A stretch of DNA of 64,000 bases from Haplodiscus bocki (GCA_965655095.1 OZ296653.1:45818001-45882000), one strand, 5' to 3'; positions 18,464 to 48,460 are shown, numbered from the stretch's first letter. The notes: generated by a model not told the origin, from the sequence alone. Numbers and translations are program-made.

Positions 18464-18660
18464 TGGATGATTTACCAATTGAAAAATTTTATAGACCACA
18501 AAACAAAAGCTTTCATCCTCTCATTTTGTACAACCGGGTTCCCAAAACCGGAAGTACAACATTGGCTAACCTCATCTACTTGACAGGCGCCAAAAACAAC
18601 TTCAATGTTGCTCTGGCAAACTTCTCAAGAATGGGTGGAGTTCTATCGCTCGATGATCAA
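18464..18660 (+). CDS. HS2ST1: HS2ST-like exon A (5'-PSB loop)
   Basis: ILYNRVPKTGSTTLANLIY...LSLDDQ; acceptor ctag, donor gttagt. Confidence 0.9.
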
Positions 18661-24099: not shown

Positions 24100-26400
24100 G
24101 GGACTTTGGGAGAGAAGTTCTCTCAGAAGTTAGTTTTCAAGTATTCACAATCCTGTCTTTTTTTCCTCAACTAAACTGTTTATTAACTCTAACACAACTG
24201 GTATTCTTGTTTCCTGAATACAGTGTGAAGAAGCACTTCGACTGAGGAAATTAAAAAGAATGTATAATCTTATCCAAAATTAAAACATTGTAAATCAATC
24301 TGCAAAACATCGTTGCTTTTTGTCACTCCTGGGAGACAGAATCAATCCGAAAATTTTCAAACAAAGTGAAAATTGCGTAAGAGTCAAACAAAAGTTGGAG
24401 TCACACCGAGATTGTTTCCGTCAATATATCGTGTAATAAATTGACCAATCAAACAAAAATTCTTATTTTGAAAAAACCCAATATTGGCAAAACAAACCTC
24501 GATTGAGACCTTGTCGGAAGAGTTCAAGTCGCTTGCCTTAGAGCTTTTTATTTCAAAAATCGACAGAATCGAACTAAAAACTGAACGTTTCCGCATGCTC
24601 AACCAATGAAAATTCCAATCCGAACGACACAATCAGAGATTGTTCCTTATAGGATTCATCTAGAAATGTTTTACCGTCAATTCAGTTTTTTATGGAATAA
24701 CTGAAGTTTGTGGTTTTCTTGAAGGACGAGTTGGAACATGGAGATATCTCAATATTATTGGCACCATTTTCAGTCAATTAGGACTCCCATTCCGGTGTAT
24801 GGGACAAACTTCATGATATTTGAGAAAAAATAGCCTGTCTCAAAAAAACTGAAGAATGACAGTTTGATGGAAATTTGCAGCTGGTTAAGCCGGTGAAATC
24901 TGAGTTTGAATATTGAGTTATGTCAGGACTAAGAGCATCTCCGGACATTCTTGGTCCATTAGGATTCCACTGAAAGGATGAAAATTAGGAGTTTTTGTAT
25001 TAGTAGTCCGACAGAGGTAAATAATTTTAGAATAAGAATATAAAGAAAGAAATCAAGTCTTAGTTTTGAAAAAAAACATGAGATCTAAAGTCAAAGTTAG
25101 TAGATATTAACATTAATTCCGCAGTATTTTGTCAATCAAACATCCAACTCAAGAAACAATATCAACGCTTTTGACAAAAAGTTCGTGGACAATTAAGGGA
25201 GTGTCCAATGAGACCATGATGAATGAAATTAGGCTTCTAGCTACGCAGAAAGAAATTGGCACATTTCGGGATTTCAGGACTATCAGAGTTTTGATCTCTA
25301 AAAAAAACAAAACATTCTCAAACCTTTTTTCCCCCACAAGTGTTTATCATTCGATTTAAACTTTGTTGGAAGCAGATATAGTTACGAGGAAATATGAATT
25401 TGAAAATGGAGTTGAAAGGAGAAAATTTGGAGCCATTGGACAAGCAGGAATTTTAGGACTGAACAAAAAGAAAAATCTATCAATCAAATACTTTCATAAA
25501 AGTCGAATGTTTTTACTTGACACATTGATGGGAGAAATCAAGCCAGTAGTTAAGGAGAAAATGAGTTTGATTATCGGGATAAATCTATATTGAAACCTTT
25601 TATTGGAAATTTTGGACGATCAGAATTTGGAGGCAAGGTTAAGGAAATTAGTTTTCAATTCAATGTTCTTTTTGCTAGCCAAAGTTTTCCATGGAGACTT
25701 GTGTGTTGAAAAAACCTGTAGTGATGGAAAATTATGAGTTTGAAAACAGAGGTGAATCTTCATTTTAGCACTGTTTGGAACTTTCGATTTGTCAAAGATC
25801 TGATGCAAGTGTCAAAACTTTTGGTTTCTCTGTCAAAAATTCTTTTTGAAGTCTATTTTTTTGATTAAGACCTTCATAGAGGAAATCAAACTTGTAGTTA
25901 CGGAGAATACTGACAACGAAAATAGAGATAAATCGGTCTTATTTGAACTTTTTGGGGTTTTTAGACAATCAGGGTTCTGATGCAAGAAAATAGTTTGACA
26001 ACTTCTTCATGGAATGGCTTATCACAAGTTGGAATTTTCCGGTTGAAATCTTGGTGGAAGAACTGAAGTCAGTACCCATGAAGACGTGAAAAGTTTGATA
26101 ATCGATTTTCTTCAAAAAAATAAGGGTGCTTTTTTCGCATTACCGGTCCATGAAGATTCTTACGCAAGAAACAAATTTTTTTTTGCAATTGAAAACTCTT
26201 GTACAAGTAGCAGGTTTCCAATTGATACCTAGATGAAAGAATTCAGTCTTGTGTTTTCAATGAGAAAAGTGAGTTATGGCATCAAAGAAAATCATTAGTA
26301 CTTTTGCTTTTTGGTAATCCCTTATTGTGGGGATCACAGAACGATTTATTTCAATAGAAGTTTTACTGAGTTGAAAATGTTTTTTCTGACCTTGGAAAAA
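24100..26400 (-). repeat. Second copy of the AT-rich subrepeat family (opposite orientation to 14620-16923)
   Basis: cctcgattgagaccttgtcggaagagttcaagtcgcttg matches the reverse complement of ~16775-16815; tatgaatttgaaaatgg matches the reverse complement of ~16600-16617. Confidence 0.5.
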
Positions 26401-30190: not shown

Positions 30191-30429
30191 CCCGGGTTGA
30201 GATCTGAGAGACATTCAGCTCCGATTCAGAAACTCTCCGCAATGACGAGTGCTGTTTCAGTGCTGTTCATTGCCTGATAATCTCTGAAGAGCGCTGATTC
30301 AGCTGTGATCAGCACTGAATACAAAAATTTCAGAGAAAAAAAATTAGCCCTTATTAGAGCTGAAATTTATGAAATCTCTGAAACAACGCCGCTGTTAAGC
30401 GCTATATTGCTCTAGGCCTTCAACCTGGG
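30191..30429. mobile_element. MITE with CCCGGGTTGA terminal inverted repeats
   Basis: cccgggttga ... tcaacctggg; internal CAGCGCTG-type palindromic subrepeats. Confidence 0.75.
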
Positions 30430-30659
30430 CAATCAAGAAAAAAGTTGGTGGATAAAATTTATCGGTTGAAAACTTCAAACTTCAGCATCGTGAAGGTGAT
30501 AGCAAAAAAAAAGAAAATTGTGGAACCAAATCACGGAAAATCTGATTTGTTATCACCTAAGTTCAAAAAGATCGATAAAGAATACGACATTGCTCAAGGA
30601 ACAGGTGTATCAAAGGACAATGTGAACAGACTGTGTCCAAATTAGTCTGAATGTTTCAG

Positions 30660-30745
30660 ATAAATTTCGTGCGCAACATATCACATTCCGCTCAAACTCT
30701 GCCTGTGGTGGTGCATGGTCACTTCCCTTTTATCAATTTCAAAAA
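30660..30745 (+). CDS. HS2ST1: HS2ST-like exon B (catalytic HGH)
   Basis: INFVRNISHSAQTLPVVVHGHFPFINFK; acceptor tttcag, donor gttagt; too short for the ORF track. Confidence 0.9.
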
Positions 30746-32643
30746 GTTAGTTTCATGTCGTCTTGAGCATTCAATAAAAGCAGTTTTACCTGAAATCAAA
30801 GAAAGTAAGCAAACTGGTTTTGTTTGAATCTTATATATTTTTTTGTATCTGATATGTGTGTTAAACTTGTATCATACTGCGGCTATTTGATGTTTTACTT
30901 TCAGCCATAAACTCTTGTGCAATTTTCACTTCACTTCATAGGTCACTATATATAACTACCATATCCATATTCCTTCTATGTTGCTCAACTCGGGATGTTA
31001 TCACCTATGATGCTGAGATGCCAATTGTTTTGACGTCAAAATTCAAGTCAAAATTCAAGTCTTTTGTAAAATAAATGACTTTTCGCATCGTCTGAGCATA
31101 AAAGAATGTCATCTTTGGCTAATTTGAATTCGAAAATCTCAAAAAACAATTCCGCTGATGAATCATCACCGTCATTTGCAGATCAAACTTTCTATTATGA
31201 AGCAGAAAATCCAGAAAACATCAGTCATTCCACATCAGACGTAACTTTGCCTGAAATAGAGATCATGACGGCATCCAGCATCGCCACTGATTCGGTGTTG
31301 TGTCAGAACAACTCCGCTCCTGTCTTTTTACCCAAAATTTGCACTTCGAAAGAGAGTAATTCAACCATTACCAACCAACTTGGAAAACGAAAGTCAGAAC
31401 TCTGAACGACTACTAATCGATAAAAATAACCGGCAGTTTCAGTGACAATTAATTTTCAAAATGAAATTTTTGGACAATTTTCCCACTTGAGAAAATACTT
31501 GCAAAAACAGAACATTGTTAAATTTTAATCTAATTTTTTACTTCCCTTTCAGAAATAAAATTGGACCAGTATTTCCGACGATATCCTAATTTTTACGCCT
31601 TTTCGACCATTTTTTGGACTTTTTGCTGAAAATATTTTCATACACAAGAAAATTTTGAAAACTCGTCTGATGCTTTTCTGTAGTCAACGATGTCCTCGAA
31701 AATTTTCCACTTTAACATTTAACACTTTTTCAGGAAACAAACTCCTGAGTAGCAGTCGAAAAAAATTGTTTGCTATGCTCAATCTTAGTACCTTGGGACT
31801 GAGTTGTCAATTCAGTTTTCGTTTGACCGCCTAAAGAGTTTGTTTCCTGAAAGAATGTTAAGGGTGAAAAGTTATAGAAGACAACATTGGCTGCAGAAAT
31901 CATCAGTCAAGCTTTCCAAATATCTAGTGTATAAAGAAACTTTCGGCAAAAATTGCAAAAAATGGTCAAAAACCCGTAAAGTTCAGTGTATAATAACTTT
32001 TCAATTACTGATTCAAATTCCTCACAATATGCACGATTAAAAGTTAATTTAAATTCTATGAAAATTTTGTTTTACAAGTTTTTCCCAAAGTGAGAAATTG
32101 TCTACAAAATTTGGACTTGAAAACTGACTCTCATTAAAAATGAACTGATTTTTATTTTTGTCAGCTAGTGTAGCCTTTTCAATTTTAACACTCTGGGTGG
32201 AAATTCATTGTTAGCATACGGTTTGGCACGAAAGTTGGTCACTCCCAACGTGAACGTTTCTTCGTGAAAAGTCGGCCGTACTGCTTTGACTTACTTTCAT
32301 CTCGTTCATGTCTGAGCGATGAATTTCCGCAAAAGTCGCACTGCCTATCAAAACTTAGAAAAATTGGCCCTATAGGTCGAGTAATGTTTGTTCGTATCGT
32401 CTACTCTACTGTCAACTTTTTTGGGCCAGGAACGAAACATTCATTGATGGTTGACAATAAGCTTCTCTTGCTTATTAATCGGTCACCTAAAGCTACAGTA
32501 ATTATCGGTCGGATTTTTATTACACTGAAATCATCTAAATTTTTCACAAAATTGAAGATGAAATTACTTTCATCTATCCAAGCTAAGAATCTCATATCTG
32601 AAGCCAATTGCAAAAAAATTAAATTGTAACCATTTTTTGATAG

Positions 32644-32782
32644 GTTAGGCTCTCCGGTCTCACCTTTGTACATCAGTCTAGTGAGGGATCCGATACAGCG
32701 TTTAGTGTCGTCATACTACTTCAAAAGGTTTGGTGACACATTTAACGGCGACAAACGTCACAGCAGATACAGAGACGTAATG
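32644..32782 (+). CDS. HS2ST1: HS2ST-like exon C (3'-PB motif)
   Basis: [25 protein letters not shown]; acceptor tttttgatag; donor gttggt at 32783 (alternative in-frame gtaatg at 32777). Confidence 0.88.
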
Positions 32783-32880
32783 GTTGGTTATAGTTAATTT
32801 ATCATAAAAATAGATTCAAATCTTGATTATAAAAATAGATTGAGTGATAAGTTAACGAATTTCTTGTTGGGTTAATGCAG

Positions 32881-32978
32881 AGTTTTGACGAATGCTGTGC
32901 CAGAAACCTCACAGAGTGTAGTTCCCAATCTTTGTGGTTACAGATTCCTTACTTCTGCGGAAACTCTCTTCTATGCTC
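32881..32978 (+). CDS. HS2ST1: HS2ST-like exon D
   Basis: SFDECCARNLTECSSQSLWLQIPYFCGNSLLC; acceptor tgcag, donor gtgagt. Confidence 0.92.
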
Positions 32979-33361
32979 GTGAGTCCAAACTATAATATTA
33001 TTTTCAGGTCTCAGCTTTAAAAGATTAACTTTCAACATTAATGAACATCAATTACTCAAAATTTTGAAAGATAAATTGAGAAGTGAAATTTTTTATGTTC
33101 AATGAAAAATTAAGGATGAAGAACATTCGTGAGTCTTTTTTCCGTTTCTGGTGGCTAACATTTTTTGACAACTAAGATTTCATGGGGTCTTGTTTCAACT
33201 GTGATATTTTTAGTAAAGTCAAGTTTCTCAAGAAACCCTTTTGCAACATAATGCGAAATCGATGTATTCAAAGTTAGGACATTTTATTCTTGATTTTGGA
33301 CGTAATTTACTTCTTTAGCAAAATTTCGTAGAAGCAGACAAATAAATTTCTTACTTAAATC

Positions 33362-34459
33362 TCAGTTTTTCTCAGCTTCAGACATATTTTCGTGAATCCA
33401 CGTGGTCACTGTAGACACCTTCGCATATACACCGGGGTAGTTTTTCTTCGCACATCCGTTGCCCCAGGAAACAAGACCTGCCACAAAAAACTGCCCAGAC
33501 TTTTGTTTACAAACAAGGGGAGCCCCGGAGTCCCCTTGACATGCATCTGCTTGTGAATTGAGGTACCCTGCGCATATCATGTAATCAGTAAAGTACTTCT
33601 TCTTATGGTTGAAAATGTCTATACATTCGTCTCGTGACAGTATTGGTATATAAATTTCTTGTAAAGTTTTTGGGTAGTTTGTAGTTTGGTAATCCGTTAC
33701 CCCCCAACCTGCAACAAAACACATATAGTCTGTGGTAATATTCAGTCCGTATTCAGGCAGACAAATTGTGTTGCAAAAGTAGTTTTTTTTGACACGTTCG
33801 TTCAAAACAACAATAGCAAAATCGAAGTTTGCGGTGTCAAAATCGTAGTTTGGGTGAAGTTTGTAGTTCTTGATTGACAGTTTTTGAGTACTGGGCTCAT
33901 AGAACTCAGGGTTTGTATGATATTTCCCAGCATATAAAGAGTATTCTACAGGCACATCGAAGCAGTGAGCAGCTGTGAGAACCACTTTCGTGCTAATTAA
34001 AGCACCTGTGCATATAACATGGCCGTTGTGAACAAATTGAACCAGCCAGGGAAACTCTGCACTGGATTCCGGAGCGTGACCTCTAATGATTCTTTTGCCG
34101 ACAAACGAAGTTTTACGTTCCAACATTTCCATCTTGAGAAGTCTTGTGTCTGAAGTCAACGGAATCCGAGTTCCACATGTTCCGGTTGAAAATTTAGCAT
34201 CGGGGAAGCAGTCGTAGCTAGTGATTTTGTCGCAACTCCGGGCGTCTTTCGAAGGTCCAGAGCAAAAGGGCAATTTTCCTTGACACACTCGGGTTCTTGT
34301 TTCAGTAATGGCAGAATTAGGATGGCATAGTTCTGAACACTCTTCGGACCATGGACCCCATTCGCTCCATCGAGACCATTTCGAAAGAAGATTTTTGCAC
34401 AGAATCGGGTCGATAAAAATTAATAAGAACAGTAAAATATGCATATTACAACTTTCCAT
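33362..34459 (-). CDS. Secreted TSP1-domain trypsin-like (S1A) serine protease, intronless, nested in HS2ST intron
   Basis: ATG in strong Kozak context (GCCACAATGG) at 34459 (ORF-track start 34531 is TTG); signal peptide HILLFLLIFIDPILC; TSP1 WSRWSEWGPWSEECSELC..RTRVC; activation site KR-IIRG; triad TAAHC / NFDFA / GDSGAP; S1 Asp in DACQGDSG; AATAAA on minus strand ~33283-33288. Confidence 0.95.
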   Translation of the reverse strand: MESCNMHILLFLLIFIDPILCKNLLSKWSRWSEWGPWSEECSELCHPNSAITETRTRVCQGKLPFCSGPSKDARSCDKITSYDCFPDAKFSTGTCGTRIPLTSDTRLLKMEMLERKTSFVGKRIIRGHAPESSAEFPWLVQFVHNGHVICTGALISTKVVLTAAHCFDVPVEYSLYAGKYHTNPEFYEPSTQKLSIKNYKLHPNYDFDTANFDFAIVVLNERVKKNYFCNTICLPEYGLNITTDYMCFVAGWGVTDYQTTNYPKTLQEIYIPILSRDECIDIFNHKKKYFTDYMICAGYLNSQADACQGDSGAPLVCKQKSGQFFVAGLVSWGNGCAKKNYPGVYAKVSTVTTWIHENMSEAEKN

Positions 34460-34605
34460 TGTGGCAGTCTGCAATGGATACTGAAACACAATTTGTTCTT
34501 CAAGACGTGTGTTTTGAGAGCTAACATTCAATGTTTTTCAAACTTCAGTAAATGCGTCGATGTTTGTCAACAAAATGTCATGTTCATGGGTTTGACGTTT
34601 TTTAG

Positions 34606-34766
34606 TGAAAAAAGAAGTTTTGAAGCATTGGAGATGGCGAAAAGACGAGTCGAAGAAGAGTATCTTCTCGTGGGGATGACCGAAAAGCTGGGTGCGTTCG
34701 TTGAGACATTGGAAGCCTTACTACCTCAACAATGCCATGGAATTTCTCGTCTATACAAAACATCAA
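34606..34766 (+). CDS. HS2ST1: HS2ST-like exon E
   Basis: EKRSFEALEMAKRRVEEEYLLVGMTEKLGAFVETLEALLPQQCHGISRLYKTS; acceptor ttttag, donor gtgagc. Confidence 0.92.
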
Positions 34767-35155
34767 GTGAGCCAAACATGAAACTTCAAAGCATGACTAA
34801 ATTTCAATCAAAGGTTTGCATAACTAATGCTTAACAAATGTGTAAACAAGTTGTACATAAAACTTTTGTCAGAATATTGGCTGAAGAGGTGGAACATTTA
34901 AATTTATAAACAACTACAAGGAACATGGCCTGAGAATGTAAGTTTCCTGTGAACAAAATCAGTTGATCGTTTCATGTCATTAATATCTCATTACAGTGAA
35001 TGAAATAAAGGAATATTCTGTGCAAGTCGTACATAAACCGTATCTACCAAACTTGAATCATTTTGTCGTTCCTTGCAGAAGGTTCGGGCTGAAGAATATT
35101 GCTTTAGCCCTTTCTTGAAAAATATTACCATAGTGAAAAATCTAGTTCAGTATTT

Positions 35156-35340
35156 CCCGGGTTGAGGTCTCAGAGGATTTCAGCGCCGACCAGCGCTGTT
35201 TCAGTTCTAATTCAGCCCTGGAAAATCAATTTTTAGAGCAACAAATTAAGCACTGAACAGCGCCGTTTCAGCGCTGATTTCTTCTGAAACAAATCTGTTT
35301 CAGCGCGGATTTTCTCAAAGAGCTCTAAGTAGCGTACATT
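35156..35340. mobile_element. Left arm of CCCGGGTTGA-family MITE
   Basis: cccgggttgaggtctcagaggatttcagcgc; inverted match at 47659-47689. Confidence 0.65.
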
Positions 35341-35537
35341 TTTTGAGGAATCAAGATGACAATTTTTGGCTGATTTTTCAGAACTTTTTTCAAAATTTTC
35401 GAAGAATCTCAATTTTGAGGTACATAATTCAAATTTGCAGCCCTTATTGCTGATATTCTTAATCAACGAAAAACACTTGAAATATAGAGCAGTACCTACT
35501 ATTATTTTTAACAATCTCTTATACTAAGAGAAGCGCT

Positions 35538-38500
35538 CAGTTTTTTATTCTTTAATGCAATCTCTCCCTCTTAAAATGTTCAGTTGCAGTATCTAACCAC
35601 TTTTACATACAAACAATTTGATACAACATACAATTCTTATCAAACACCGTTATTCAATTTCATTGCAAAAAACGTTTCAAAAAAACAACTTCCCCATGAA
35701 CTATATTTACACAAAAAACAATATAATAGAATATACTCTTACATTACGATCCTTACCAGACTTCAATCGATAATTTTTCATTTAAAACCGATATTGTTTG
35801 CCCTTCCACCTCCCACAAATCCAGAAAGCTTAGCCAGCCAGAAGTCTGAGAAACCCCCCATAACACTCCGCAATCGTTGTCAAGAAAAGGAATGCAAAAC
35901 ATTCTACTAAAGAGCCCAGTAACTCTTTTTCCTAAAAATGCAAAGCATTCATTTAATTTCTGTTTATATTCGATTGAAAAAAAAACTATTTCAACTGTAA
36001 AACACGTGCCTTAAAAAAGACCAATCCCAAAAGGAAAATGTAAAAATGTAATCGAAACAAACGCTTAAAGCAGCTGGCCACACATCCAAGAGATAAGTAC
36101 AATTGAACTTTTGTCATGGGTTGAACAGCAAAATCGCGGTCGGTAAATTGCTGATAGGAGTGGGGTTGCTCAAGTTACTTTAAAAGTAAAGCCAGTTTTT
36201 AGCGTGATGTAGTTTTCGTTTTTTCAAACTGCCTCAAAGCTTTTTTCACCGGGACTTGCCCTGCGATAACCCTAGATGTGCTCCCTAGCAACAATCATTG
36301 TAGACAGCAGATAGGGCCCGTGAGTTAGAAAAATTTACTGAGCGTACGCTAACAAGCAACTTTTGTTGGTAAACCCGTCACAAAAAGTTCAGTCTATCTC
36401 ACTAAACTCAAATAAACACTTAGAAAAAAAACGTTTAACTGTAGAAGAATCACCAAAGTTTTGTCTTTTTTGGGTCATCCCCAGTCCGTCAAAGGCCTTT
36501 TCAGACCCCTTGAACAGTCAAATACTTTGTATCTAACTTCTCTTTAATCCGGCTCGTTGTTCCATAAGCCCACTATCCAACTAACCCTTATATTTTGAAC
36601 CGTACCCCACCAAGCAAACCACCTCCGCAGTACTCACAAACTGAAGGTTAGGCCTACGTTTGGATGAATATTTAGCGTTGAGTTTCAAGTTTTTCATTTT
36701 GGCATTGTTTTTTTGATAGTTTTGCGCTAGGTTTTCCTTTTTACACATCTCAACAAATTCTATTAAATTTGCTCAACAACAACTTTCGGAAACTAAGAAT
36801 GTCGCATTGGGCAAAAACAGCTTTAGTTCTGATTGTTTTGTGGGAAAAGAATAGTCTAGGTCGCATTTGATTTTCAAATCGGATTACAAGCCAACAACCG
36901 ACGGTGAGTAGATATTTTTGAAAGATCCTCATTGAAGATCTGCCAAATTGAAGGTTTTAAGTTAACTGAGAACTTCAACTTTTCCTACAACAGGCACTTG
37001 CCTTCACGTCTGCCCAATCGTTCGGTTGTATGGGAGCATTGACCCTAAACGTTCCACCATAACCAAACGCGCCAAATACGCTATTGAATATCTCTCTCTA
37101 CCTTGCGTCAGATAGGTCAGTAACAAATTCCTGAAGAAAATCAAGTCCAAGAAACGACTTCACTCACCCCAAAACAATATAAACCTCCTGTTACATCGAA
37201 TTTCTGAGGATATCCATTACAACTGTTAATCAAGTGACATACAGATTCTACCCGATTACATTTTTCCAGTTTTAAGTTGTACGTCTACGACCGTCCTCCG
37301 TTCGGCATTTTTTTCACAAAATTGGGCGTTTTTTGTTTAGTTAACCACAAAGAACTTCTTGCAAAACTTCTCATAGCGTTCGGTACACCTGGTGTTTCAG
37401 TAACAATTCATCTGACATTCTCCAAGCATCCTTAACTGCATCAGACGCTTTGAGTAGCGGTTGTAGAACACTCTTCGTCACGTCAGCGAGGAGACGACGA
37501 CCATTACGTTTTTGGAAAACGCCGGGCAACAGCTGATACATAAACAAAGGTATTTGGAGCGGATCCGATGACTTTATCAAAGTTCAGGCGTACAATTTTC
37601 AAAACGTCCCCCAGAATGACCTTTATCGTGAAATTATTCCTGTTGCGCCGAACTGGAACAGTTTTTTTGGCGTTTCAGTGAGTACCAGCACTTTCGAATC
37701 GACAATTATGTCAACCAGCACGTTTTTTGCGAACTGGTTGACTATCTTGCCATGAAAATCAGTTAATATCTTGACAACTCTATTATTCTTACAATGAAGG
37801 ATTTTTAAGTTTGAAAACATGACCTAAACTCAATCTGAAATCGAACTAGGAGCAGAGGTGGAAGAAAACATACAGTGGCAGCGCCGAAGGCCCTGAAGTT
37901 TCCATGAAGTCCACTTCGACACTTGGAGCGGCCTCCCACGGTGCCAGCAGTTATGCTGGCGGCACACCCTGAATTTTCAGCTATCTATCGGAGAGGAACT
38001 TCAATTGTTCCGTTTGTTGGCCTGCCTGGAGGACCTCTCGTCCAAGCAACTATACGTCCAGCATGTCCATGCCCGAATCTTTTAGTGGTTGCGGAGAATT
38101 CGACGATTGTCTAAAGCAATCCAACACAGCAACCATGCTGGCCAGCTGGTGTTCGGCGGAAAAAGAGCATCAACCCCAAAACTCAGCACTTCAGATGAGA
38201 GATAATGGATAAAGAGATGCATTTCTACACAATTTTGTCCCCATAGGGACAAGCTGATCAGGGCGTACACAAAGAAGCATTTCAACTGATTTAGAGAACA
38301 AATGTCGATTTTTTCAAAGCGCGTCTGAGAACGACCAAGCAGCAACCGGTACGGGAAATCGCCGATTTTCTTTGCAATGTACCAGCTTTACCACGTCGCA
38401 TTTATCTCGCCAGCCCAGACTTGATTGATCAAATTTTTCTCAGGAGCTTCGTCGAAAGTTTAGTGAGTCTAACTTTCGTTGGGAATTAAAGGAAACGAAA

Positions 38501-41500
38501 CGAGACCTGCGACAGTGGAAGAAGACTAATGCTAGCAATAGAACTTGTAACGTTCATTACACTGGAAAGAATAAACTATCACGGATCCACCAGCCAAAAC
38601 AACTTTAGTTTTAAGATTGTGACAGCGCATTCCCTCAGTCCGACAAAATTGACGACCTGGCAATGTCACTACGAACAACGTGGACAAAATTTAACGCTCA
38701 AGAGACAAAAAATGACATAAACAGGACATGAGTTGAATTCATGGTTGAAAGCAGAGATTTTAACAATTCACGGGACCACACGCAAACCAATTTTGATTCT
38801 GCAGACCAAAACTATGCTCTCAGAAGGAAAATGGAACAATTCGAATGATTAGAAATTTAAATCGATTCGTATGGAGCTTAACAGCCGAACTCAAAGCAGT
38901 CGATGGAACAATTATTAATGTAACGGATCCAAAGATCAAAGACACGATAAAAACAAACCAAGCATTCTTCCAACAAGCACGCAGAACCAGCAAACATTGG
39001 GTTTTAGAAAAAATAATTTCCAAAACGCATACACGTACAGAGTCAGCCATGTCGTTTTTGCGGACGATCCAATCACTATTCACAAAGTTTCAAGCATGCT
39101 TCAATTGCATCGGGCACTTTCGCTATCATTCCAAAGCGATTCCAAAAAGAAACCGTTAAATTGAACCAGTCTGCGCAAAGGAGTTTCAGCGCAGACACTT
39201 ACAGAAAATGACGCAGAACAAACAAAAAAATTAAGTTCTAAAAGGGATCCTCGCATTCTGTGTAATGTGTTCAAGAGTGCAATTACTTAATTGAAGCAGT
39301 GTGTGAATATGGGGCAAGCATTTTTTTCCCAAATTCAGAGATCTCTGATGTCCTGCGGAAGACAAGCTAGAGCAAACTGGGTGCGTCTTAACGTTGGCGT
39401 CAAGGAAAATGAACATGAATCTCATGTCTTAGGGAACACTGAGACTGCTAGCTTTTTGGGGATAGATTTTGAAGTTAATCAATTCGATCCGCTGTTTTCG
39501 CGGATGGAAAGGTTGCTCAATCCAACCCATTCTGTTTGGATGTATTACAAGACTTTTAACTATCACACCAACATAGTTTTTGGAATTATAGCAAACCGAA
39601 ACTACCCTCGTGCCTGCAGGCTATACCGGTATCCTCCAGCACATAATTTAAATTAGAAGAGACCAACCTGTCACCCTCAAGGCTGTCTTACAGCCCTGAA
39701 ACAAATATCCCCCCGTGAAAAGGATGTTTCTCTTCCAAATATATTGTTCAATTACACAGAAGAAATTATTGCGATTGCTTTGGAGAAAAAAGCAGACTCT
39801 GATGTGATTATATACAAAAATCTACACAAATTTTTCTGAAGTCGTAACTGAAAGCATCTTAAAAACCATTCTTTGTCCAACAAAACCTTCACGCAGTCAA
39901 CAACTCAGTAAGTATGACTTACTTTAAGAAATTGGCATAGTTAATTGATCAAGGTATTAGAAAGATTTAGACAAAAATTCAGTGACTGAGTGGAAGAAAT
40001 TCGCTGTGTCTTCTCCAAAAGTGAGTGCGATTTGTGTACAACAACGCAAAGAGGTACCGGATTAAAGTTTGTTCAGGTGTCAAAACTACGTCAATTATCC
40101 GAACCGAAAGATGCCTCTACAATACAAACAACACCCCCAAAATAAGTCACAGGGGGTCCATTCTTGGAGCAGGATCTGATCAATCCCTTTTACTCTCCAG
40201 GAAGCACCCCTGCCATGCACATGGCAAGTGGCGTCTTTTAATTGACTACCGCCAAATCAGTAAACAATCAAGGAAATCCAGCTGGCTAGAATCTTCCATA
40301 CAAGTATTTATGATACAATGGAAGTTAGTGCCTAGTTCTCAGAATTGATATGACCGCCGGAATTCATCAAGTCTCATTGGAGTTGAGAGGTCAAAACTAT
40401 ACCACCTTTAGCACACTTTTCGGATCTTTCACCTGGATCACCATGCCAGTGGGACTCACAGGCAGTCCTAAGACTTTCAGTTTAATTCAACAAAAATTAG
40501 TTGGCCTCACGTGCACGACGAGCCTATCATGCCCGGAAGATTACTTTTTTCATCGAAAAGCTCCTGAGGAACACACTTCAGGCCTTCAAGAGATTCTTCA
40601 ACGCTTCCGTGAGGGCAACTTCATAATTAACCCATCACAAGATGCTTTCTGTCAAACGAACATTTAGTTTTTAGTTCACGTGGTCAGCATGGATGGCCTG
40701 CAGCTTGACCCTAAGGAAAATGCGGCAGTGAAAAAGTTCTCCCTTCCACTGAATCAGAATTATGTATGTTCGTTCATGGGTTCAGCATCATACTACCGAC
40801 GTTATGGACCAGAATGTGTCGCAACTGCCCACCCTCTCCGCGAAGCGAGTGAAAATTCGTCCGTGTTATCGCAGAGCTCGAAATCACAAGAAAGTAACCA
40901 GTGTCGGAAGGCCCGATAGACCTCAACACTGATTCTGGCTCTCCCATCACTACAACAACCTTTAGTCTTGTAAACTTTTGGGAGTGAATCAATTCCCAAT
41001 GGTAGCTGTTCTGGCCCATATAAAAAACAGTTTCAGCGTGCTATCTGACAAGTTTTCAAAGGATTCTTTGAATCTCAGTCCAAGTTTTCAGCAACCCGTT
41101 GGGAACTCCTGGCCATTGAAAGTTTACACTACATTTCCGTCACTAATTGTTGAGACGCAAATTCACCATAGTAACGACAACCGAGTACTCCCTTGGCTAC
41201 TGAACTTCAAACATTCGAATCGGAGGTCGGCTCGTTGCTTGCAAAAACTAGCATCTTTTCATTACGGAGTTTGCCATTAACCAGAGTTGTCACTTGGACA
41301 CTTCGATGGCCGTTCGAGAACACCAACTCCCACCGTAAATTTGATCAGTGATGAGCCCTTCCGATAAGACTTTCTGACCCCAGACAAAATCAACCTGTGG
41401 GAGCATCCCAGAATCATACAGCGAAATGAGTATTATCATGCATCTACTAGCGGCCCTGAAGAATGGCCAAACCGAGAAACTCCTCATGCCAAACAACCAT

Positions 41501-44500
41501 TTTCTGAAAAGGAAAATGTCTCGACCTCAAACCAAAAAAGTCGTCGGTGATGTAATCCAATTGACCAACTCTATCGCTTACTGTGCTTTCGGTGACTTCA
41601 AACTGTAAGTTGCAATACCCAAAAACACATCGGCTACTCACCTTGTTAACCGTAATCACAGACTAGCTCACATGCGGGATCAATTGGTACCAAATGAACA
41701 GAGATATATTTGTCATTTAAAAATCCATCAAAAATTTCATGACAAAGCGTCTTGTGGCACCCTCCTGACATCACTGGAGCAATTGGGAATGCATGCCCAA
41801 AAACGAAGATGTTTCCCCAAACCAGCAAGCTTTGTATCGCGTTTTGCTTCGACAAACTTGAATGAGACAAAGTACGATTATTCAGTCACGACCCATTCAA
41901 AACTTGCTATTGCTGCCATTATTGTTTATCTTGGCCAAAAGCTTCACAACACTTCCTACCACAAGTCACAAAACAAGGCATTTCATTCGGTGCAGCTCAG
42001 AAGTCCGAGAAGCCTTGATACATAAAAGAGACTATATAAGTAAGGAACATGTGCCGGGACACAAAAACCTAAAAGGCTGGCGTCCTTTCGGCGAGAAGAT
42101 GTATACTCAATTATTAGGTCCCTACCTTCACGAAAACCCTCTTTGCCGTTAGTTTGAACCAAATAACGGCAACGGACCATACCTACTACAGATAGTCCCT
42201 CTAGCTTTAGTGTCTGAACTCATCACTTTGTTTCACAATTCTGCAGCAACTGGACATCTCGGCAAACAGAAGGCAGTTGAGAAAGTCCGTCGACGTTTCT
42301 AGTCGCGGTGATTCAAAACGGATGTGAAGCAACCTATCCGTTGTTTTGACAATTGTCAAAAACGAGCTGGACCTCCGAAGACACCCCAACATTCTCGTGT
42401 GGAAAACTAGAGATCTACCCCTTTCGCCATATTGGCCTACAATTTCCTGGATTACTTCCAATGTCCAGCGGCAACCAATACATCATGCAAACCAGGAATC
42501 TTTTCAGTAATTGGTACGAAGCAGTTCCACTGCCCGGCCAGCGTGAGGAGACCACCGCCCTAGCTTTAATCGAAAGATGGTGCTGCTGTTTTGGATGTCC
42601 CAGAGTACCCATGTAGACCAAGTCCGCATAATCGAATCAGAATTCTTCGAAGCAGCGTGATGCAACTACTAGAAGTTGACAAGGCAATAACTACTTCTTT
42701 CCGTTTGTAGTCCAATTCCATTACTGACCGCATGAAAAAAACGGTTTTGAATATGCTTCCTAAAAAACTTGATTATGATCAAACAAACTGTTTTACTTGA
42801 GTCCCTCTCGTAGGGTAAAGTGTAATCGCTCCTCGGTTCATGAGTCTACAGGATTTACATCATACTTTCTCATCTTTGGACATGAAATGTCTGCCACTTG
42901 ACATAGTGTACACCTCTACCGCAAGAAATTAGCAAACTTTCTTGAGTAATCATGCATTGAAACAACTAGAAGCGTTTCGCAAAGCTTTTGAGCTAGGGAG
43001 ACCCACGGAGTACGACTGCCCGACAGCTGCGTGGCAACTCTTTATGTAACAGCAAAAGTCCATGGACCAAAATACAATGAAGGCGATCCGCGATCCGGTG
43101 CTCCTCCATTATCCAGTTCCAAACACTGATTGTAGTCCCAAGTCATCCAGCCAAAAGCGAAGGCCCTACCGTCTCACTTGAGGTTCAATGACTTGAACAA
43201 CAATATGGAATATTTCATCACTGTTGAACACTGTGTTGTCTGGTGCGATCGACTTGAACGATACCACGGAGCCGTAGTTCCGCCATCACTATTTTTTAAG
43301 CGTGATCTATCTACCAAAGGTGCTCCAACCAAAAAACAATCTCATCAGCTCGATCACTCCCATTTTGAGTGTTTTAGCTTTCCAACAGATTTTTTTCCCT
43401 CTTTGTCACCTCCTGTTCCTGTTTTGGTCTGAAACCCATCGCCAATTCCGTACCCGAATTCATTTTCAGCGTTCCCTGCCAACAAAGCTTCTGCCAATGC
43501 CTCTGGCTCCTCCATCCTACCAAGCTACTTTCAACGCTTCCACACTCCCAGCTCATTCGCAATCTTCCTATGGTAATTCACCCATCCCTGGACGCACTCT
43601 TCTAGTAGAGAACTTCAATACGACGCCTGACCGTTGAGGTGTACAGTGTGTCGAGCTATCGCTGTAAACACAATTTGAAACAAAGTACCTTTTTTTCAGT
43701 TCAGGCAACCTCTCCGTCTCCCCAATACACAAACATTGAATTGGCTACTGAATCAAGCGAACCCTTTTAAAAGTCCATACTATCACCTGTGATTGCAAGA
43801 ACTTCGACGCAACTCCACGAACGTTTTCTTGGCGAATCCTCCCCCAACATCCACAACAGAATTACGCGACGCCACTGTGGCATACGGTAAAACTGAGACA
43901 CAAATTAAAGCCTGATTGCCCAACCACACTTTTATCCACACGGAAAGTCGGAATGTCAAAAACTGCAGTCACAAGAGGCAGCTCTAATCTTCTTCAGCGC
44001 TTTTTTATACAGCCAATGCCCAACGCCAACTGATCTTTGAAAATGGGTTCTTCAGAAAACGCAAGACGCGAAAGGCATGGACGACCAAGCTCTCGGTGGT
44101 TCATGCCCTCACTCTTATTAGTTTATGTTCTAACCAATGTTCAGTTTACCACTCATTTGAGCGACGCATTTCAATAACACCTCAAGGATGGTTCATCGTT
44201 TGCCTTCAAATACCAAGCTGTGATGCGAAAGTGAGTGTGAATTTTGTGTGTTTTCTACGTTGCCGCCGAAACACATCAAAACGGTGTGAGACGCGTATAC
44301 ATTTCTTGAGACGAGAGGCATTGGGAACTCACTGAATGAGATGAACACAACTAAACGCTGCTGGGCTGACCTAATTACAAACCTGTAAAAACAACTTGTC
44401 GACAGCTCAAAGACAAAGGTGCCCTGTTTACAAAAAAAGATTGAAGGCGCTCAGATTGAACAAGAATAGTTGAAACCAACGGCCGCTTCCTTCATGTCAA

Positions 44501-47200
44501 TTCCCATTACACATCACAGCCCTTCGAGTAACAAACGACGAGTGGGTCTCACAAGGTTTCCTTCCCCACCTACAGATAACGCTTTTGCGACCGAATACTT
44601 CCCTACAACCAATTGCCTGAACCCTAAACCAGGACCTCCTAAAACTCTGCCTGACGTCACCGACACTGCTGTAGAAGTGGATTTGACGGAGAGCGTCGCC
44701 ATGTACAAGTTCTTTCATGGAAAACTTCTCCTCCGTTGACCACATGGAGCAGGACATCCCCGAAGCACGCAGACAGGCATAGACCACTCCAGCACAACTG
44801 AGTGAAATACATGAACCGGAGGCTTCGCAAAAGTTGAGTCCCTCACAACCGAGAAAGAGCAAGTCTAGTTCAACTTACGAGACGTCAACGCCGCCCACAA
44901 AGACCTGATGCAGCACTCAATGGAGCAAATAGAGACATTCGGTTCCCTACGGAGCAAATTATCAGGCAACTGATCGACCTTCGAGCCGAACCTTCCTTCT
45001 CTCCAGGAGCTGCTCTTGACGCTCAGGGCTGACTTCGATGAAGACCTGAATTTCAATGATACCTTGTATCATTTTGCTAGTTGTTCTCCACAGGCCTAGA
45101 ACGCCATACTATGTGCAAATGTCTATCGGCTGCTTAAAAAATGGCATCTGAATCATTCCAGAACCGTGGAAGACCCCCTTGTCGAAGCGGCAGGGCCTCA
45201 ACCTCGATGTTCACATTATTCAACCAGAAACGACCACGACAGAAATTCACCAGGTGTTCGAGCATTGCGGGCCCATAGTCTTGCAACGTTTACTACAATG
45301 CCCTCAGCGTTTTGCTGGAAGTGTATTCCTCGGGGACCTAATGGAAGTCCGATTCGTCAGGGTCTTCTCGAATAACCTCAACCGCTAGTTTTTTCCACTA
45401 CGAAGATTAAGCTTCTTTGTCTCTGTTTTTTTGTGCGAGCTTCTTGGTTTGTGTTGGAACTATTTTCCGGAGCCCCCACACCGTTTTTGCTGCGTCTCGT
45501 GTGGCCTTCACCAGGCCTGTCGCGTGTTGTGTTTTCTTTTGCCACAAAAAATTTTGTTTGGTAGTGAATAAGTCCCGCTAATGCGTATCATTGGTTTCCA
45601 GTTCCTTAGCTGCAGCTGTGAATACCCTGAATGGTGGTGTCTTCGAACGCTTAGCAGCTATTCTTGGACTACACTTGGTTAGATGCTCTGTCGGATTCCC
45701 CCTTTTTGAACACTCTTTTTTTTCAACATCGAAACCTTCCGCGCATCAACAAAAACAACTCACAACTCATGATCATCTTGTGACATAACACCATTAAAAT
45801 CCACTTTACTCACACCCCTCCAACCTTTACAATCTCTTAATTTCACAAGAGCTCGTTGAAGAAACGTGCGTTCTTCCTTGGAAATCAGCATTATACTGAC
45901 AACAGAAAGACTCTCGTGCTGTTCTCGAACAACTGCAACACTTCTTCTGGGCTATTCATGCGGTCAGACAACTCTTGTCACACCGCATACTCAAGGAAGA
46001 CAATCTAGGTTGTCACAACAGTGATCACCATTTGAACAACGGTTTGGAAATCAGCTTGTACTTTCTGATTTCCAGACACGTTAATGGCCTCAAATAGTTG
46101 CCCAGCAAGTCAACCGGACTAAGTAACAGCCGCCTCAAATTTCAATTCAGTCGCCTTCAAGCCTTACTGCAGCCATCTGATCCTTAACAATCCCTTAATT
46201 CTTATTCACGCACAAGTGCCACAGCTAAAACTACGACAACAACAAAAGTTGCGGCACTATTCCGTCTTAGTCAACGTTGACAAGCCCTTCATTTACTTCT
46301 CGCCAGCCGTCTTGCCTTTTGGTGGCTCTTTTTCAATCTCTTTCTTTGGTTGTCTTCGAGGGGACATTGCTTGCTCAAGAGAGCTCTGCTTTTCAATTGC
46401 GAGGATGCAACTCTACAAAAGGGAGAATGACCTTGCGATCCTCGCCGAACTGTGGATTTAGAAAAACCACAAACCCCTGAATTACCGAGCAGTCGCCACT
46501 TTGTTAATCTTACTGAACCTACTAAAGATTGATCATTTTTTTATATAAGTGGAAGAGCGACGTACTATAATCTTTCAAGCAATCTTTAACCTAAAATGTC
46601 AGGTAGACAATGACCAACCACTTTTACATACAAACATTTTTGTACAACATACACTTTTTATCATACTCTGTTTTTTTTATATTCACTGCATAAAACAAGT
46701 TTAATAAATGTTACTTCCCCGTGCTCTAGCTTTACACACATTACAGTATAATTTAATTTATTCTTACATTACAATCTTTCACTTGATTTTTTTTCATAAC
46801 TGATCATTCAATACCGATAGCTTCTGCCTTCGACCTCCCGCAAATACAAAAATCTGAGCCACCCAAAAGTCTCAGAGACACCTCATAACACCCCACACCC
46901 GTCGTGAAAAGAAATTTCTACTGAACTACCCAGCCTCCTCTTCATGGAAATGTAAGTCTTTTAAATAATTTCTGCATTCATTTGCTTTTTAATTAAGACT
47001 ATTTTAACTGTAAAACAGTTTTGAAAGTAGAGCAGTCGCAGAAAGAAAAGTATAATCGAAATGAACCATTAAAACAACTATCCGAGATCCGAGAGAAAAA
47101 ATAAAACAGAAGTCTTGTCATGCATTTAACAGCAAAATTTGGTCGTTAAGGCTAAAAAGTGGTGAAGAATAAAGAAGTCATGTTGCTGCTTTTTTACGGG
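35538..47200 (+). mobile_element. Decayed Ty3/Gypsy LTR retrotransposon (~11.6 kb) in the largest HS2ST intron
   Basis: Direct repeats 35540-36150 and 46561-47150; CA end plus PBS-like TGGCAGCG at 37873-37883; gag knuckle CFNC..GH ~39106; RT WRLLIDYRQ, MPVGLTGSPKTF; RNaseH; integrase GNQYIM..FSNWYEAVPLP; PPT-like AAGTGGAAGAGCGA ~46547. Confidence 0.85.
40200..42950 (+). pseudogene. Gypsy pol remnant (RT-RNaseH-integrase)
   Basis: Motif remnants in RT-RH-IN order with many stops and frameshifts; YxDD degenerated to CPED. Confidence 0.85.
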
Positions 47201-48248: not shown

Positions 48249-48460
48249 GTGTGAAGAAACTTCGGAAGACGAGGCATAAAGATAAAATCAACTCTACGAC
48301 TTTTGCGACTCTATCCAATTCGTTCGAGTATCAACTGGAGAACGACTTCTACAATTTTGTGGCAAGAAGTTTCCTGAAAACCTTAAATCGAATCCGAAAC
48401 CGAGAAACGCGGGCAAACGATTTTCCTTTCAAATTTGAAAAAATCCGATTAAATTCGTAG
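48249..48460 (+). CDS. HS2ST1: HS2ST-like terminal exon F
   Basis: VKKLRKTRHKDKINSTTFATLSNSFEYQLENDFYNFVARSF...FKFEKIRLNS*; branch-like tactaat plus tttttag acceptor; AATAAA ~48615. Confidence 0.9.

Follow-up and report, generated by a model that had tools for sequence, protein, structure and literature searches.

A TSP1-like and trypsin-domain protease gene nested antisense within a short intron of an HS2ST-like gene in the acoel Haplodiscus bocki

More than one in ten mammalian genes host a nested gene (PMC11694760). Among metazoans, intronic antisense nested genes resemble the gene described here in that the whole coding sequence is contained in one host intron, on the opposite strand, with host and guest presumably unrelated in function. 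Nested genes usually occupy long introns. By that measure the 1.6-kb host intron is unusually short, and its guest, with a start codon only 146 bp from a host exon, fills two thirds of it. The closest single counterpart is found in Convolutriloba macropyga, in which a protein annotated as 'anionic trypsin-like' (XP_075240501/2, isoforms X1/X2) is an ortholog with 57–59% identity, a matching architecture and the same antisense nesting. It differs in its longer N-terminus and in a linker interrupted by a phase-1 intron; the host intron there exceeds 13 kb, and ~1.46 kb separates the gene from host exon E.

Outside the acoels, the LDLa-TSP1-trypsin proteases of echinoderms (Asterias rubens P0118 and Anneissia japonica P0117; NCBI 'suppressor of tumorigenicity 14 protein homolog') likewise carry TSP1 directly upstream of the S1A domain. 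Their linker (CFP[D/E]AK...CGTR) and activation site are homologous to those of the acoel protease, and they are 32–34% identical to it over ~90% of the acoel query. The echinoderm proteins differ in possessing 4–5 LDLa repeats and are encoded by multi-exon genes of 9–10 kb; the acoel protein is reduced by comparison, with a single divergent TSP1-like repeat between a predicted signal peptide and the protease. No sulfotransferase was found near the echinoderm genes, which stand alone and are not nested in one. The sea star and feather star loci (L025 and L026) share their downstream neighbour, an LDH/MDH-like dehydrogenase gene with Ldh_1_N and Ldh_1_C domains on the other strand, and this adjacency is conserved microsynteny across echinoderm classes.

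A third parallel comes from Drosophila, in which Pipe, an HS2ST-family sulfotransferase, acts upstream of the Gd/Snake/Easter cascade. There too, an HS2ST-family sulfotransferase is associated with extracellular trypsin-type zymogens, but the genes are unlinked and the proteases carry clip or other domains instead of TSP1. The role of Pipe was shown genetically, whereas the acoel pair is known here from sequence alone.

The window, the 64-kb stretch of H. bocki DNA analysed here, carries, on its plus strand, six exons of an HS2ST-like gene. Exon A (18495..18660, 5' boundary approximate) bears the PAPS-loop motif NRVPKTGST and was placed by its HS2ST1 match and splice phases. Exon B (30660..30745), containing HGH, was placed by homology to the loci of relatives and by phase; exon C (32644..32776), with RDPIQRLVS, by homology, a weak Pfam match and phase. 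Homology and phase also defined exons D (32881..32978), E (34606..34766) and F (48249..48460), the last of which carries the stop codon. The donor of exon E at 34766 was picked by homology together with the end of the match to L021, an ENA locus described below. All six exons are phase-consistent. Host N-terminal exon(s) were not located among plus-strand open reading frame pieces examined exon by exon.

The host exons were searched singly, not as a joined protein. Against the solved chicken HS2ST1 (3f5f/4ndz), exons A (E=8e-7), E (E=7e-7) and F (E=0.2) gave collinear matches. Identity of ~45–50% over two exons suggests that, among HS2ST, UST and Pipe, the host is an HS2ST. To our knowledge, HS2ST is the sole member of its sulfotransferase family in the PDB. 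Single exons gave only sub-threshold matches to Pfam Sulfotransfer_2 (weak, in exons A and C), and the short host exons of the window went undetected in a genome-wide PF03567 search. PAPS-binding and catalytic motifs were found in the exons; their functional roles are presumably those generally known for sulfotransferases.

Intron D/E (32979..34605, plus strand) is 1627 bp long, in phase 2, and has GT..AG boundaries, with a GTGAGT donor at 32979 and a 3' end reading ..TTTTTTAG at 34605. A Ser codon is split across the junction, two bases coming from exon D and the third from exon E, so that the host frame is continuous. The first-pass annotation had described an antisense TSP1-trypsin gene in this intron, filling about two thirds of it, with no transposon remnant recognised. 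The open frame, its Pfam Trypsin match and the phase-matched flanking exons bear this out: the protease coding sequence takes up 1098 of the 1627 bp (67%), wholly within one host intron with canonical, frame-preserving splice sites. The rest of the intron on its non-coding 3' side occurs once in the 1.5-Gb genome, and contig read depth is flat across the intron.

The protease is encoded on the minus strand by an open frame of 389 codons (33362..34531), of which 365 are counted from the ATG at 34459; the coding sequence (33362..34459) is a single exon of 365 codons followed by TGA. It is the longest open reading frame of the window, in which only five reach 150 aa or more. With a stop frequency of 0.066 per codon, an open frame of this length would arise by chance with a probability of ~3e-12 per start, or ~4e-7 expected per window. 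A putative AATAAA poly(A) signal was read from the sequence ~75 nt past the stop (33283..33288, minus strand), and the 3' end of the transcript would fall ~290 bp short of host exon D.

All features of the protein are encoded on the minus strand. A signal peptide is predicted at about residues 1–22 (34394..34459), with the hydrophobic stretch HILLFLLIFIDPILC. The ATG and N-terminus are conserved in L027, a further ENA assembly. The trypsin (S1A) domain (33395..34087), defined by Pfam and sequence motifs, matches PF00089 with 198.4 bits against a cut-off of 20.6 (E=1.8e-58, residues 125–355, profile 1–220/220). It holds the complete triad, invariant across orthologs: H165 (33965–33967, in a TAAHC context), D213 (33821–33823, in DFAIV, as in D-x-A-[IL]) and S311 (33527–33529, in GDSGAP), with D310 adjoining the catalytic Ser. 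The S1 pocket is trypsin-like, with D305 (33545–33547) six residues ahead of the Ser in ADACQGDSG, and with SWGNGC and YPGVY supplying two pocket Gly. The Asp at the base of the pocket implies a predicted specificity for cleavage after Arg or Lys. Ahead of the domain lies a linker (34091..34207), assigned by sequence, orthologs and echinoderm homology, in which the CGTR cysteine, C95, is followed by a zymogen activation site, KR|IIRG (residues 122–127). Cleavage after R123 would leave a new Ile N-terminus. The site is invariant among orthologs, and the protease carries an ICLP cysteine in addition to the linker CGTR cysteine.

Between signal peptide and linker lies a TSP1-like repeat (residues 28–84, 34208..34378), recognised by motif columns and hhalign. 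It displays a W-x-x-W ladder (WSRWSEWGPWS), an RTR layer and six cysteines (C41, C45, C59, C66, C76 and C84), all invariant across orthologs; the glycine of CSxTCG is replaced, the motif reading CSELCHP. On PF00090 the window protein scored 12.9 bits, under the cut-off of 21.6, although 1–46/49 of the profile was spanned. Every ortholog was also sub-threshold (13.7–17.2 bits against 21.6). By hhalign, the acoel N-terminal module matched echinoderm TSP_1 with 97.3% probability (E=2.7e-11, 44% identity) in an alignment that takes in the following linker; the echinoderm domains used as target themselves pass Pfam, with 36–39 bits on PF00090. AlphaFold2, run on the whole protease from an alignment of only five sequences, gave a pLDDT of 52.5, with residues 1–135 below 50 and an unusable N-terminus. 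We accept the module, on profile evidence, as a divergent TSP1 repeat, because it aligns with Pfam-valid echinoderm TSP_1 domains. The TSP1 domain named by the first-pass annotation thus stands as profile homology, but not by its own Pfam score.

The proteins closest to the window protease are an ENA protein with 98% identity, two further ENA proteins with 64% and 73%, and the C. macropyga protein with 59%; all other relatives are at most 39% identical. There is no near paralog in its own genome, the best being 32% identical. The functional residues and TSP1-like columns are all invariant among the orthologs, and five assemblies, representing four lineages, all preserve the open frame. Pairwise identities group the window gene with L027 and L022, and L021 with C. 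macropyga.

L021 and L022 are ENA loci, presumably acoel, and were searched with translated open reading frames of the window. In both, the protease is flanked by homologs of host exons A–D on its downstream side and of E–F on its upstream side, in the order seen in the window and on the strand opposite to the protease. In C. macropyga, the NCBI annotation places a 391-residue Sulfotransfer_2 gene across the trypsin gene, which lies on the other strand, and exons E and F are again upstream of the protease. Host exons A–D were not found there in the 10 kb beyond the protease, so that the nesting in this species is taken from the NCBI gene span alone. Because the same antisense layout occurs in L021, L022 and C. 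macropyga, the nesting is older than the split of the four sampled lineages. The first-pass annotation had allowed for its being absent from relatives; it is present in three other species.

L027 (5025–13428) corresponds to window positions 31045–39372 as a contig of ~90% identity over 8.4 kb. Its divergence from the window is uneven, amounting to 12.5% in 34767–39372 and 3–5% in 31045–34766. L027 may represent a divergent haplotype or a sibling taxon.

Synonymous differences between the window protease and those of L022 and L021 are saturated (pS 0.75–0.77), while dN is 0.15 against L022 and 0.33 against L021; for L022, the two exons were counted apart and the counts then summed. Over the short distance to L027, the coding sequence shows 26 substitutions and no indel, with dS 0.067, dN 0.013 and dN/dS 0.19. 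Of these substitutions, 11 are non-synonymous, compared with an expectation of 79% (binomial p=5.7e-5). The protease is thus under strong purifying selection on both time scales.

We consider the best explanation, at a probability of about 0.8, to be that the locus holds a functional, acoel-restricted gene for a secreted mosaic serine protease, which has resided in the HS2ST-like intron since before the four-lineage split and has been kept there by inertia. The gene would have entered the intron, or have been enclosed by it, before the four acoel lineages diverged. Its product would leave the cell as a zymogen, to be activated through cleavage after R123 by a protease of trypsin type, which may be the enzyme itself. 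By homology with proteases of the ST14/TTSP type, a disulfide between the linker (CGTR) and ICLP cysteines may then tether the TSP1-like propiece, which might target the enzyme to matrix or glycan ligands.

That the open frame is untranscribed or decaying is hardly credible. Four sequencing runs, all from one study, cover the locus; none is recorded as RNA, which is the one point in favour of a pseudogene. Against it stand the intact frame across assemblies and lineages, the dN/dS of 0.19 on the short scale, a dN far below saturated dS on the long scale, and the two annotated splice isoforms of C. macropyga, which suggest transcript support in that species. Contigs of the four runs were compared over 30400–36000. 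They cover introns and exons alike and contain no splice joints, and are thus DNA-like. In run X2, contig depth is ~3x higher over the protease than in the flanks. An RNA origin of this run was considered and rejected, since introns are covered and contig ends coincide with those of other runs; polymorphic pooled DNA explains the pattern. Also in X2, which comes from another sample, contig depth is near zero over exon D and adjoining intron (32831–33204), compared with 60–70 over the protease coding sequence. This gap is probably due to a diverged or indel-bearing allele in the pooled sample.

A retrocopy was among the readings offered by the first-pass annotation. The absence of introns from the coding sequence, in the window and in the L021 ortholog, and the compactness of the gene, alone in a short intron, speak for it. 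An ancient retrocopy would mean that a processed protease mRNA was inserted in the intron and recruited a local promoter. The orthologs speak against this. In L022 (10814–11335), a 522-bp phase-0 intron (GTATGT...CAG) separates Q267 from E268 (LQ|E), at a site where the window gene has none, and three paralogs in the genome of the window (L008, L011 and L012, probably of one S1 subfamily) have an intron acceptor at exactly this codon boundary. In C. macropyga (L023, 10409–10960), a phase-1 intron follows ...GADP in the linker between TSP1 and protease; its two acceptors, 9 nt apart, give rise to the NCBI isoforms X1 and X2. By event count alone, two intron gains are as cheap as four losses. 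Because its position matches that of the paralog introns, we favour the LQ|E intron as probably ancestral, with the intronless state of the window gene derived. Neither acoel intron position coincides with those of the echinoderm gene introns that could be mapped.

Further points also weigh against a retrocopy. Neither a poly(A) tract nor a target-site or flanking duplication is visible in the sequence around the protease. A search for an intron-bearing parent paralog, suggested by the first-pass annotation, yielded none in the genome, the best paralog being 32% identical, and trypsin domains encoded whole in a single frame are common in this genome. The first-pass annotation had also considered that the retrocopy might have captured a bidirectional promoter. 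The 5' end of the protease faces exons E and F, and the host promoter must lie upstream of 18.4 kb, on the downstream side of the protease and at a distance of at least 16 kb; this geometry excludes a shared bidirectional promoter. In all, we consider a retrocopy origin unlikely.

The functional nested gene that we favour would be transcribed from its own promoter, which would occupy the spacer or else lie beyond it, across exon E and intron E/F. The spacer between ATG and exon E (34460..34605, minus strand) measures 146 bp, close to the ~150 bp of the first-pass annotation. The window and L022 share an identical 22-nt block; a further block (AAGAACAAATT...) can be recognised in the window, L022 and L021 alike despite the saturation of synonymous sites. 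Against L027, the spacer has 2 mismatches in 146 bp, compared with 3–12% in neighbouring non-coding DNA. The spacer probably harbours 5'UTR or core-promoter elements of the protease and/or branch-point elements of the host. Two 3-bp insertions (AAC at 34484 and GTG at 34506) were seen in alternative haplotype contigs of runs X2 and X4, within this otherwise most conserved stretch.

Overlap of the protease promoter or 5'UTR with exon E, as foreseen in the first-pass annotation, is plausible. The distance from ATG to exon E is 146 bp in the window and ~147 bp in L022, but reaches ~375 bp in L021 and, in C. macropyga, ~1.46 kb; judged by this spacing, overlap with exon E is not a conserved feature, because the distance differs in the latter two. 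The same distances bear on the proposal of mutually exclusive expression, in which transcribing the protease across or close to exon E would alter how the sulfotransferase pre-mRNA is spliced or elongated, or the host would act likewise on the protease. An ATG 146 bp from exon E, with a 5'UTR or promoter that probably overlaps the exon or its acceptor/branch region, would suit such antisense regulation, and mammals provide documented cases of crosstalk between host and nested genes (PMC11694760). The close spacing is absent from two of the four species, however, and we regard such regulation as unlikely.

A tighter relationship would be a functional module in which the sulfotransferase makes a 2-O-sulfated glycosaminoglycan that is bound by the TSP1-like repeat of the protease, nesting serving to maintain co-inheritance or co-regulation, by analogy with Pipe and the protease cascade downstream of it. 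TSP1 repeats can bind heparin, and the W-x-x-W and RTR motifs of the protease are invariant. The conservation of the nesting in four acoel lineages at saturated dS, and that of the spacer abutting exon E, would also be in line with a module. But an intronic gene is hard to separate from its host and stays in place by default, and for this reason conserved nesting is no argument for a functional link. In addition, L021 and C. macropyga have not kept the spacing to exon E, no sulfotransferase adjoins the nearest TSP1-trypsin genes outside the acoels, and the antisense, head-on layout favours interference over co-transcription. We consider a module of this kind very unlikely. A broader proposal, that acoel HS2ST-type sulfotransferase and TSP1-bearing protease form a conserved antisense pair with coupled expression, one locus controlling both 2-O-sulfation and the protease that reads it, we hold to be highly improbable; coupling of this sort could operate through head-on mutual exclusion or shared enhancers.

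Under the reading that we prefer, of a functional protease gene kept in place by inertia, head-on transcription of host and guest within the same cell would be predicted to cause interference instead of co-expression, and the linkage of protease and sulfotransferase would be historical, not functional. Several observations can be set against it. The runs that cover the locus are DNA-like, and the TSP1-like repeat scores under the Pfam cut-off and has an unusable AlphaFold2 model. The conserved spacer beside exon E could represent shared regulatory sequence, and a functional link, too, would keep the pair together while synonymous sites saturate.

We conclude that the gene is real and belongs to known kinds, and that its functional coupling with the sulfotransferase is speculative. 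The locus adds a well-supported, lineage-specific protease, predicted to be secreted, to the sparse annotation of acoel genomes, and presents it as a reduced form of the echinoderm-type LDLa-TSP1-trypsin architecture. It is also a clean example of a nested gene that has stayed in one short intron while synonymous sites became saturated, and whose orthologs differ in intron loss. Were coupling true, the locus would rank among the rare instances in which the gene for a glycan-modifying enzyme is linked in the genome to that of a protease potentially reading the modification, and would form a genomically hard-wired analogue of Pipe-controlled protease cascades; the findings do not require it.

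The two large introns of the host were also described by the first-pass annotation as filled with transposable elements, and dispersed repeats are indeed present in both, with 1461 and 551 first-look candidates. In intron E/F, positions 35075–35448 form a very high-copy repeat, with a contig word depth of 900–1800 compared with ~40 in the flanks, and with numerous loose ends and internal joints. A 320-bp dispersed repeat occupies 39501–39822. The block at 40000–47000 in the same intron has a higher G+C content (0.43–0.47) and strongly negative GC skew, and is free of long open reading frames and tandem repeats; within it, ~42.8–44.5 kb matches one other site in the genome at 65%. At 24387–24999 lies a dispersed repeat of ~600 bp with more than 40 copies at 67–72% identity, some of them clustered in tandem on contig C2 near 147.30–147.33 Mb.
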